Source: Vitrella brassicaformis CCMP3155
Taxonomy: Eukaryota; Protista; Chromerida
DNA length: 64,000 nucleotides
Assembly (NCBI GenBank): GCA_001179505.1
Contig: CDMY01000295.1
Location: forward strand, 1 to 64,000
Direction: 5' to 3'
Shown: positions 40,527 through 48,412 of the stretch, one piece after another
How positions within the stretch are numbered: the first letter of the stretch is position 1
Layout of the letters: each line of letters begins with the position of its first letter
Program-made: the position numbers and the translations under genes
Notes under the pieces: model-generated
What the model was told of the DNA's origin: nothing
Databases searched by the model: none
Seen by the model: only the letters and a program-made list of their open reading frames with translations

Positions 40527-40659
40527 AGTGAGCCTACTCACAGCCTCTGCCTGTCTCTCGACCGCCATAGTCTCAGCTTGAGAGCACCGATCGAGCATTA
40601 ACAGAGAGACATGTCAGCACGGTTTTTCGGTAGCGGCATGGCAACTGTGGCAGGCCGTA
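40527..40659 (+). repeat. Dispersed repeat segment A (second copy at 45291-45388)
   Basis: ATCGAGCATtAACAGAGAGAcATGTcAGCACGGTTTTTCGgtAGCGGCATGGCAaCTGTGG at 40590-40650 versus ATCGAGCATgAACAGAGAGAgATGTgAGCACGGTTTTTCGtaAGCGGCATGGCAtCTGTGG at 45323-45383. Both copies are preceded by AGTGAGCCyACTCAC. Confidence 0.9.
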
Positions 40660-45290: not shown

Positions 45291-45546
45291 AGTGAGCCCA
45301 CTCACGGTCTCTGGTTGTGAGCATCGAGCATGAACAGAGAGAGATGTGAGCACGGTTTTTCGTAAGCGGCATGGCATCTGTGGCCGTATTGATGATACGA
45401 ATGAGTCAAGACACACATACACACACTCTGGCTGTGTCTGACATGCACCGGCATGCCAATCAGAAACACACACACAGAGACCAATCATGGCAAAAGGACA
45501 ACCATCAGCTATCAAGCCATCAAGCAACCATCCGATGCACTCACTG
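45291..45546 (+). repeat. Composite dispersed repeat: segment A' (45291-45388) immediately followed by segment B (45394-45546)
   Basis: A' matches 40527-40659. B matches 48184-48412 and includes an exact 34-bp match, CACACACTCTGGCTGTGTCTGACATGCACCGGCA. Confidence 0.9.
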
Positions 45547-45636
45547 ATTGGAACATTCATGTCAAGCACACAGTGTGTACACAGCCACACAAGCTTGTCA
45601 GCCTCCCACTTACATCCCCTCCATCCTCCCCCGCGC

Positions 45637-46365
45637 TCAGAGCATTGGAATCAATCCGACCCGCTTCCTGAAGACACAGACACGTCCATTAGCTGTGCAT
45701 CCGAAGCATGAATGTGCCTCCCAGCCCTCCCTCCCTCCCCTCTCACCCGTCAGAAAGTAGGAAGGGCACGTGTACTTCAGTGACGTACCGAAAAGCACCT
45801 CTTGCTCATTCAGTGAGGGCACAATCCACGTGATGCCCGTATCTCTCTCCCTCCTTGTCATTGCCTGTGACGGTCTAGTCCTCCCCCCAGCCGCACCCCG
45901 CAGCCACACACACACTTGTACGATGGTGCTGGACTGCGGGTGGCCGAAGGATAGCTCACGGCGAGCTGCACATAGGTCGATCTTGTCCTTGTCTGGGTAG
46001 CGGGAGTCTGGCTGGGGAAGGACAGTGCCGCGCTTGGTGCACTGATAGCACCAAATCTCTTGCAGCCGGCCGTCCATCGTCACAGCAATGAAGAAATCGA
46101 ATGTCGGGAAAGAGTGCCCCTGCAATACGAATGCTGCGTGCCCCGTCTTGAGCTGTGTGTGCCACTCAAGATGAGTTGATAGCCATCCCGTTTCTTCGAG
46201 AGCTGAGCCGAGGATATCATCAGTGCTGCTCCAGGTGCCACTCGAAATGTGTCCTCCAAATTGACACCCCGGCTGCTGCACGACGACTTCGGGCAGGAGG
46301 TCAGTGAGCTCTGTGGGCATGGCTGGGAGGCCCTGAGAGCCTTGGCCCTTGAGCAACATATCACT

Positions 46366-46397
<32 letters not shown>

Positions 46398-47965
46398 GTA
46401 CGCACGCCCGCGCGCATGAACCATGTATATACCTTCCCCTGACCTGTATCAGTCGCAATAGAACCGCTGCCGCACAAGATCCCTCCCACTCCTTGCCCGA
46501 CTCATGGATGCTGATGAGACGCCCCAAATTGTGCGCGATGACATTTAAACCCTGACGCACATGCACGCCGAGCCTGCGTTCGAGGGGGTAGAGAGATAGG
46601 CTTTTGAAGACTCCAGAGAGATAGCATGCAGGCCACACGTGGAGGACAGGGCCCTTCTGTTGTCTGCTCGACGACTCCTCTTCAGCCTTGGTGCCCTCTG
46701 ACTGTTGCCTCTCCCCTTCCTTGAAGACGTCCAATAGCTTAGACCATTCCTTGACGGTATCGCAGCTTGGCTGGTTCCCGTTGACGGCTGTTGTCAGGAC
46801 GCACCGCAGGAGATTGACCGCTGCATCGGGTTCATTGGCTGCCGGGCTGCCCCATAGAAGCTGAACCTTTGCATCGAGGGGCTCCTTAGTGTGACGCCAA
46901 TCACAAATTAATCCAGGGGACCTACCGGCCCAGCAAACCTCGCCCGGCTTCGCGCGAAGGAGGCTCCGCACGTGGCTGAGGTCTTGTTCGTCGATAACAG
47001 GGAGCTGCGGTTGGAGCACTGGCCTGTTGCTGTCAGAGGCAAGGAAGTCGTTGAGGCTGCTCGAAGTGGCGGCGACGTGGGTGGTAAAGACAAAGTACCG
47101 GTTTTTTCTGAGCAAGAATGTGCTCTTCAGGTACTTGCCGAGTTCTTGGTACTCACTGCTGTCCCTCTCAGGACGCACGAACTCTAGAAAGAAACAAAAA
47201 GACACATGCATGAGCCGTGCATTCTAAACATACAGTGCACCCCTGCCATCCTTACGATTTAGCTCGTCGATCAGCAGCACACATGGATGAGACGACAGCC
47301 AGGCATCGACGGTCTCTTGATCGACGTTCGCGTGGCTGGCGAAGTGATCGAAGTAGAGATCAGCCACGTCTTCACCAGCTGCCTTGGCCACCTTCTCTTT
47401 CAACTCATCTTTTGCAGCAGCCCACGCAAGTCGCATGAGCAGCGGCCGTGTAGTGGTGCCTTCCCTCCGCTTAAGAGCGGTCTGGTCGCAGAAGCCTATG
47501 TAGATAGGGCTGAGGCCCTCTTCCTTCAGCTTGCGACCGACCTGTGCAATAAGCATGCGATCGAGTCGAGTCAAAAGGGAGGGGTTGCACGGCGGGACTT
47601 TGAGCGAATCGACTCAATCCGTGTACCTCCGTGAGCATGCGTGTCTTGCCGCCACGGGAGAAGCGGGTCAGGGACATTGGCGCCACGCGATGGTCGGTGA
47701 AGTCTGTGGCTTGTCGGTACTCAGGCAGCAGAAGTGCATACACCTTGTTGACCGCTGATGCCCCGATGAACTCCGGAGGCTCAGATATCTCCAATTCCGG
47801 CAGCGGGACATCAGCGGGGAGGTGAAGGTCGCTCACTGTCACTTGAACGGGCTCTGCACACACATGTCACACACACGTCCGTGACCTGCCCTGTCTGTAT
47901 GTGCCTTCTCGTGTCGTATACGTACCGTCCAACTTCCTTTTTTTGGACTGAGCAGCTTCACTCAT
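45637..47965 (-). CDS. Crinkler/RHS-type protein: N-terminal NLS, P-loop NTPase and C-terminal restriction-endonuclease-fold domain; about 5 exons
   Basis: Exon 1 MSEAAQSKKRKLD (47965-47926). Walker A-like TRFSRGGKT (about 47643-47669), Walker B CVLLIDE (about 47261-47282), nuclease-type HSFPTFDFFIAV...IWCYQCT (about 46116-46037). The exact 3' end is uncertain. Confidence 0.8.
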
Positions 47966-48183
47966 GCTGTACGTGGCAGGGAAAACCGGTTCACGCGTGC
48001 GTGATCTGGCAGCAGGAGATCTGCAAGATGCAGCAGTTTCAGACTCGCAGACAGAGGGTTTCAGACAGAGACCGTTTGCGAGCTTGGCTTAAGTTCTCGC
48101 CCGGACGACGTCTTCCATCGGCACACAACGCAGAGAGAGTGCGCGTCAGTCAATCAAACCACATCAACACCTTCATGATGATT

Positions 48184-48412
48184 GATACGACTGAGTCAAG
48201 ACACGCATATGCTGTGCGTATCCTGGCCGGATCTGCGTCGGTGTGTATGTGTCCTCACAGCTGTCGGCACACGTCCACACACTCTGGCTGTGTCTGACAT
48301 GCACCGGCACGCGAGTCAGAATAAACACACAAACAGACAGACCGCCCCAACAACGGCACCCATTACTCATCAAGCCGTCAAGCAATCACAATCCGATGCG
48401 ATGCACTCACTG
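48184..48412 (+). repeat. Dispersed repeat segment B' (direct repeat of 45394-45546, with an insertion of about 70 nt)
   Basis: GATACGAcTGAGTCAAGACAC (48184-48204), exact 34-mer (48276-48309), ATCAAGCCgTCAAGCAA (48369-48385) and GATGCACTCACTG (48400-48412), collinear with segment B. Confidence 0.9.

Follow-up and report, generated by a model that had tools for sequence, protein, structure and literature searches.

A headerless Crinkler-type NTPase-nuclease gene with a putative nuclear-import leader in the free-living alga Vitrella brassicaformis

The Crinkler-type NTPase-nuclease module is familiar above all from pathogens of plants and animals, where it serves as a host-killing effector. What might such a module do in a free-living alga? 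The question is raised by a gene on the minus strand of the window analysed here, the first 64 kb of contig CDMY01000295.1 of Vitrella brassicaformis CCMP3155; its protein is called P0001. We favour, with a probability of roughly 60%, the reading that the P0001 gene is an intact, expressed paralogue of the eukaryotic Crinkler-type (CR) NTPase-nuclease module that lacks the Crinkler header and works as follows. A 13-residue leader on a mini-exon would supply a classical monopartite nuclear localisation signal (NLS; KKRK-L-D) for import into the alga's own nucleus. There, an AAA+/STAND-like ATPase would bind ATP and, to judge from its fold and intact Walker A and B motifs, probably oligomerise on DNA. 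It would control a C-terminal domain of PD-(D/E)xK fold, which would bind DNA and possibly cleave it, with a division of labour like that of McrB and McrC or of TnsC and TnsA. A displaced lysine (Q-C-T-K in place of Q-x-K) might leave cleavage weak or lost, and what remained would be an ATP-driven nuclear DNA-binding protein, with a conceivable role in intragenomic defence or conflict. P0001 is unlikely to be a secreted effector; it belongs to an old Vitrella-specific expansion.

A review (PMC5289972) reports from Zhang et al. 2016 that CR proteins occur in free-living eukaryotes, that an NTPase joined to a restriction-endonuclease-type (REase) domain is the commonest CR C-terminus, that this module derives from prokaryotic transposon-linked pairs and that plant CR proteins which are not secreted may have DNA within the cell as their target. 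According to the same review, the retrotransposon hot spot (RHS) proteins of trypanosomatids belong to the CR (Crinkler-RHS-type) superfamily. CR modules in free-living eukaryotes have already been noted, and P0001 bears on their role there; its value is moderate, since the family has been published, and so has the notion that CR proteins act inside the cell. A literature search for Vitrella together with Crinkler returned nothing.

The kinship with Crinklers is one of homology. A HMMER scan covering 1.84 billion representative proteins gave 406 relatives of P0001 at E<=1e-3, with phmmer E values of 1e-17 to 1e-27 to many family members. Top matches were Vitrella paralogues on many contigs, representing about 17-20 distinct loci, several with MMETSP transcripts. 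Outside Vitrella, relatives belong to Chromera velia, to a Nitzschia diatom, to the aphelid Amoeboaphelidium and to many eukaryotes known from metagenomes. When a profile was built from the C-terminal half of the Vitrella copies, it matched 104 of the 159 family proteins examined in addition to their NTPase match, which indicates that the NTPase and the C-terminal domain travel as one module. In the Nitzschia protein P0077, a Pfam Crinkler header (29.6 bits; gathering threshold 24.6) stands upstream of the same two domains: P0077 aligns to residues 63-340 of the P0001 query, and the C-terminal profile matches its residues 602-841 (E 3.5e-17). The header score of another member, P0068, falls slightly under the threshold. 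In the ESM Atlas, P0001 was paired with Mucoromycota 'Crinkler family protein' clusters at TM scores of 0.59 and 0.53 over 492 residues (feature score 0.94). Because of the header-bearing homologue P0077 and these clusters, we identify the body of P0001 as a Crinkler-type NTPase-nuclease module. An earlier note, made from the letters of this stretch, had proposed a P-loop NTPase with an REase fold related to Crinkler bodies, and the HMMER homology to P0077 bears this relation out.

P0001 itself carries no header. The header domain, by which Crinkler effectors are delivered (Ubl fold, LxLFLAK; Pfam PF20147), was absent when exon pieces and the full protein were searched with Pfam, and no Pfam, NCBIfam or PADLOC model matched either of them above threshold. 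P0001 thus has the same two-domain body as the CR effectors of oomycetes, chytrids and Rhizophagus, whose C-terminus is built from NTPase, (HTH) and REase, but differs from them in having neither a Ubl/LxLFLAK header nor an HVLVxxP-type junction nor a signal peptide, in its displaced lysine, and in a 13-residue NLS leader that is parted from the body by a phase-1 intron. Strictly speaking, P0001 is no Crinkler effector, as the header is missing; it represents a headerless form of that module, led by an NLS. Nor is it a new class, since the CR body is known and the header is replaced by a short nuclear-import tag. The likely targets of P0001, nucleus and DNA, fit the accounts of Crinkler proteins in PMC5289972. 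Unlike in the pathogens, action would here fall in the alga's own nucleus.

A quick maximum-likelihood tree of the NTPase domain placed 10 of 10 tested Vitrella copies in one group (SH-aLRT 95) and the header-bearing members in a separate large clade (SH-aLRT 98). The nearest full-length paralogue, P0003, is about 39-40% identical to P0001. Taken together, these sequences suggest that the Vitrella copies are an old lineage-specific expansion of about 17-20 loci, and a single-copy housekeeping NTPase is set aside by that count. Further paralogues were not found within the window. A word-indexed protein search, run with a single open reading frame and with an 84-sequence profile, returned only known Vitrella and Chromera proteins, the method being too insensitive. 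On a Vitrella contig of 280,882 bp, the adjacent models P0005 (NTPase half) and P0016 (C-terminal half) were seen to cover one family member; they are probably one gene that is either interrupted or was divided during annotation. The earlier note had also suggested that trypanosome RHS proteins are related. Here we found no match of P0001 to Pfam RHSP (PF07999) even at E<=10, and the lone lead is a Euglenozoa cluster in which 11% of members carry RHSP and which lies weakly close to the C-terminal part in feature space (score 0.85); the suggested link was not reproduced.

The gene model was read from the genomic sequence and compared with contigs of public runs aligned to 45400-48300. P0001 is encoded by six exons with the coding sequence running from 47965 to 45651 on the minus strand (642 amino acids), and splicing the six derived exons yields the annotated Vitrella protein exactly. 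All five introns are GT-AG and 72-85 nt long. The parts of the gene are as follows.

47926..48060, minus strand: exon 1; its coding part, 47965-47926, is MSEAAQSKKRKLD (13 codons) plus 1 nt, the rest being 5' untranslated region (UTR); SKKRKL lies at 47947-47930
47854..47925, minus strand: intron 1, 72 nt, GT-AG, phase 1, at the junction of leader and body; joint 47853/47926 seen in runs X1 and X6
47627..47853, minus strand: exon 2, in which the conserved body opens (VTVSDL...PEFIG); Walker A TRFSRGGKT at 47668-47642
47256..47541, minus strand: exon 3, NTPase core with Walker B VLLIDE at 47280-47263; transcript joints 47539/47625 and 47183/47256
47255-47184, minus strand: intron 3
46444..47183, minus strand: exon 4, the remaining NTPase (sensor and lid helices), a low-complexity linker at about residues 336-366 and the N-terminal helices of the C-terminal domain
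46485-46483, minus strand: codon of E418 within SGKEWE, exon 4
46366..46443, minus strand: intron 4, 78 nt, in frame, stop-free, with a (CA)n run; transcripts X1, X2 and X6 stop at 46360 and restart at 46444
45747..46365, minus strand: exon 5, PD-(D/E)xK-like core, then VWLRG and SL..TCP
46110-46033, minus strand: C-terminal motif FPTFDFF...YQCT(K) in exon 5, with D521 (46098-46096), Q539 (46044-42), the inserted T541 (46038-36) and K542 (46035-33)
45746-45668, minus strand: intron 5; joint 45666/45746 in X1, X2 and X6
45651..45667, minus strand: exon 6, the final 4 codons and the stop TGA at 45653-45651

Every intron was confirmed by spliced transcript contigs from two studies, including the joint 47926/47853 that attaches the NLS exon. 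A single contig, record 19 of run X6 (1974 nt), covers 45780-48060 with joints 46360/46444, 47183/47256, 47539/47625 and 47853/47926, so the 5' UTR reaches at least to 48060; the 3' UTR extends to about 45424 or beyond. The genomic open reading frame 45637-47211 seems continuous, since intron 4 contains no stop and preserves the frame. The limits first given for the gene, 45637-47965, were correct at the 5' end; at the 3' end, 45637 is the end of the unspliced open reading frame, and the true stop at 45653-45651 is reached only after intron 5. Reading by open reading frames alone also joins exons 4 and 5 through intron 4 (46366-46443) and adds 26 spurious residues. An additional short intron at 45915-45865 was considered and rejected, as homologues keep VWLRG across this region and transcripts read through it. 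Run X3 is DNA-like and collinear with the genome across the gene. It carries A>G at 45763, and one of its contigs skips 70 nt (45658/45729) with ends AC..CT, not GT-AG; these variants at 45658-45763 reflect either allelic variation or the presence of a related copy in the sample.

This gene model fixes the N-terminus. The 13-codon first exon with SKKRKL that had been proposed from the letters was found at 47947-47930, on a mini-exon verified by transcripts. Upstream, an in-frame stop stands at 48091, and no ATG occurs between 48091 and 47965; a longer N-terminus, and hence a signal peptide, is therefore impossible in exon 1. The alternative that the note had kept in view, a different first exon carrying a signal peptide, is excluded for all assembled transcripts. 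Neither does the N-terminus contain a hydrophobic segment, the Kyte-Doolittle maximum over 15 residues being 1.51 and lying inside the body. With only 13 residues ahead of the conserved body and a blank Pfam result, the proposal that P0001 has neither a signal peptide nor a Crinkler header holds.

The same 13 residues contain the only run of at least four basic residues in the 642-residue protein, KKRK. In composition-preserving shuffles, such a run landed within the first 20 residues 0.24% of the time. The KR-K-L-D end of the leader resembles the NLS of c-Myc. By its sequence, then, P0001 would be imported into the alga's own nucleus via a classical monopartite NLS. P0001 is a clean study case, being intact and transcript-verified, with a nuclear-import tag on its own exon as sole N-terminal feature, and this NLS-only leader makes action on the own nucleus directly testable.

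The NTPase domain retains its catalytic signatures. Both motifs named in the earlier note, the P-loop TRFSRGGKT and the Walker B motif VLLIDE, are present on the minus strand at the positions listed above. The P-loop had also been called unusual, which it is not within its family, whose signature is (C/F)SRGGKTR: R80, G82, K83, T84 and R85 are nearly invariant across the family and all present in P0001. In the Walker B stretch LLIDELN, D181 is invariant and E182 and N184 nearly so, and R69, P72, F207, R213, H220, R238 and P246, likewise nearly invariant, are intact. Sequence searches gave a Pfam ATPase_2 match below threshold (E 0.049) and, in a profile search of the PDB, only generic P-loop matches. 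An AlphaFold model built from an 80-sequence alignment (pLDDT 84.5) was matched by Foldseek to ORC/Cdc6, Tn7 TnsC, Mu MuB, the archaeal ATPases (PF01637) 2qen and 2fna and STAND proteins (CED-4, NLRs, Avs4), with E values from 3.7e-5 to 6e-4 and probability 1.00. As modelled, the domain is an AAA+/STAND-like NTPase with Walker A and B motifs, core fold and helical lid.

The C-terminal domain was modelled from 59 sequences (pLDDT 83.6, pTM 0.85). In order, the model shows a helix with E418, a strand, a strand starting at D521, a strand with Q539-x-K, a helix and a strand (AF2 elements H62-86, E156-163, E171-177, E180-192, H211-215, E229-239). From this order of elements we read the domain as a PD-(D/E)xK core of alpha-beta-beta-beta-alpha-beta topology. 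ESM Atlas matches to the domain were PDDEXK_2, PDDEXK_4, McrC and DUF2357; McrC was the best structural match, and all were weak. A wide structural search agreed with this outcome. A profile search of the PDB by sequence gave chance-level matches only, and Foldseek against the PDB gave nothing at E<=1e-3, with YopJ/CE-clan proteins heading the list. A protease or acetyltransferase of the CE type was rejected, since the family has no conserved Cys or His and conserves E, D, Q and K at 90-98%. The REase fold is well supported by the convergence of modelled topology, motif positions and identity of the matches, and is proven by no single score. The REase assignment of the earlier note accordingly stands on topology, motifs and consistent weak matches, and a statistically strong structural match did not emerge.

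How far this domain could act as a nuclease depends on its motif, which we compared across 84 family members. E418 is conserved in 78 of them, D521 in 82, Q539 in 79 and a Lys two positions after the Gln in 76; G414, W417, E418 and R428 are nearly invariant in the family. P0001 keeps E418, D521 and Q539. At the Lys column it alone (1/84) has Thr, with Lys one position later (Y-Q-C-T-K-R-G instead of Y-Q-C-K-R-G), and the transcripts carry the same inserted Thr, so that the catalytic register E...D...(D/E/Q)xK is broken. The motif FPTFDFF...YQCT reported earlier is indeed present, but the family signature is D...QxK, not QxT, the Thr being peculiar to P0001. Because the inserted Thr pushes the catalytic Lys out of strand register, the nuclease activity of P0001 is uncertain.

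Several points weigh against our reading of the gene as an intact CR-type module. P0001 is alone in having the Lys of QxK displaced from its register. In P0003, the full-length paralogue nearest to it, Q and K are both gone, with K and V in their places; this subclade may be drifting from catalysis. CE-clan proteases and acetyltransferases (PopP2, I7L, SENP) are among the weak structural matches of the C-terminal domain. P0001 has no orthologues against which selection on this copy could be gauged. Localisation, ATPase activity and DNA binding are, at this stage, predictions from the sequence.

Among the alternatives, an active nuclear endonuclease survives best. Here, once the NLS has brought the protein into the nucleus, the ATPase would sense or load on foreign or aberrant DNA, viral or from transposons, and license a cut by the REase domain, in a eukaryotic analogue of McrBC or Avs-type immunity. 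The retained E418, D521 and Q539, a Lys adjoining its canonical position and the intact NTPase motifs suit such an enzyme, as do McrC as best structural match of the C-terminal domain and STAND proteins including Avs4 among those of the NTPase. McrBC (AAA+ McrB with PD-(D/E)xK McrC), Tn7 TnsC-TnsA and Mu MuB follow the same logic of a DNA-loading AAA+-type NTPase controlling a restriction-type nuclease, and TnsC and MuB are among the best N-terminal structural matches. Yet P0001 fuses both activities in one eukaryotic polypeptide, shows no similarity to these systems at the sequence level, and has no DNA-recognition domain or transposase partner. Non-secreted plant CR proteins are proposed in PMC5289972, citing Zhang et al. 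2016, to target intracellular invasive DNA. Against an active enzyme speak the displaced Lys, unique among the 84 members, the presence of two modules only with no further sensor domain, and the lack of a PADLOC match. We consider this role possible rather than probable.

The leaders of the paralogues raise a broader idea. Six Vitrella paralogues were mapped onto their loci, and all six have a phase-1 intron at the junction of leader and body. In five of them this intron lies 8-10 residues ahead of the conserved D-L with which the body begins; in P0156 the distance is 21 residues. No other intron position is common to the six. Leaders are of two types. Those of P0001, P0015 (PKRLKRD) and P0003 are basic and NLS-like; those of P0152, P0007 and P0156 have a hydrophobic segment, then small-x-small|F(L/M)H, then an S/T/R-rich stretch. 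We take the latter pattern to resemble the bipartite plastid leaders of complex-plastid algae, so far as sequence can tell. In P0152, P0007 and P0156 (loci L004, L006 and L005, respectively) the leaders are contained in MMETSP transcripts, and the canonical QxK is kept. Signal-plus-transit-like leaders were also seen in P0012 and in P0011/P0171/P0174. The junction intron common to all six paralogues and the two leader types are new in this analysis.

An intron shared between variable leaders and a constant body suggests headerless re-addressing of modules. Carried further, this would make the Vitrella proteins a 'leader-swap' family, in which the phase-1 intron separates interchangeable localisation leaders from a constant body and transposon-derived nuclease paralogues are sent to each DNA-containing compartment for genome surveillance or conflict; the junction intron may then be equivalent in position to the header/effector junction of Crinklers. 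We put this forward tentatively and rate it as doubtful.

Alternatively, P0001 might be transcribed while decaying, the least damaged member of an eroding Vitrella family with no maintained function. The lineage-specific insertion that breaks the QxK register would suit decay, and several family models are truncated or split (P0005/P0016, P0015, P0008). P0003, of the same species and clade, has lost its nuclease motif, whereas P0001 keeps E, D and Q, and its gene stands solitary among ordinary genes and is transcript-supported from end to end. The six exons hold an undamaged frame of 642 codons; the NTPase has every one of its family-invariant residues, and the nuclease domain retains three residues of its four. 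Spliced transcripts come from two studies, and both AlphaFold models are confident. These data make simple decay unlikely.

The preferred reading of P0001 as an intact resident CR-type gene also agrees with its surroundings. Neighbours are ordinary (a FAST-like gene, Maf1, an ITPase-like NTPase, a subtilisin, a TPM-domain gene and a Vps4-like AAA gene) and the GC content around the gene is unremarkable. No inverted repeats were found around it, and no transposase or integrase among its neighbours. It is bracketed by a pair of direct repeats.

45393..45546: direct repeat copy A, 3' UTR/intergenic, downstream of the gene
48183..48412: direct repeat copy B, upstream of the gene and downstream of the ITPase-like neighbour, with about 60 nt extra between blocks

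Copies A and B share three collinear blocks (93%, 91% and 75% identical) that exactly bracket the P0001 gene, and each lies downstream of the stop of a minus-strand gene. No further copies occur in the sequence searched, which comprised the 64-kb window and the L002 locus of 19 kb. The pair could stem from duplication of a long target, mark a past recombination event or be an element common to two 3' UTRs. In addition, a 933-bp fragment of the gene, introns included, recurs at 85% identity about 128 kb away on the same contig (L002:9631-12787). It forms part of a mosaic joining three fragments of the window, 47706-46776 (85%), 32386-31680 (86%) and 13897-13282 (77%), which is annotated as one chimeric gene, P0002. 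In the fragment the P-loop is destroyed, and conservation is no higher in exons than in introns, so this partial copy decays neutrally.

Such features could suggest a selfish or recently mobile cassette, a 3-kb unit between repeats A and B that recombination has brought in, or can cut out or duplicate, and whose protein promotes its own spread, the more so as PMC5289972 derives CR modules from transposon NTPase-REase pairs and the bracketing repeat pair is unique within the sequence searched. This is very unlikely, given that the repeats are diverged (about 76-91% identical), that terminal inverted repeats and a nearby transposase or integrase are absent, that the best full-length copy is only about 39-40% identical, that the partial copy is decaying, and that the gene has five spliceosomal introns, one of them common to old paralogues. 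What the locus offers in place of the transposase and near-identical copies of an autonomous transposon or cassette is diverged direct repeats and one decaying partial copy. The suggestion in the earlier note of a still-mobile ancestral form thus found no support, the paralogues forming one old clade among ordinary neighbours, and the P0001 gene is better regarded as resident and unlikely to be an active transposon. Separately, a dispersed 80-bp repeat (84% identical) occurs in intergenic DNA downstream of the gene, at 45307-45384 and 40570-40651.

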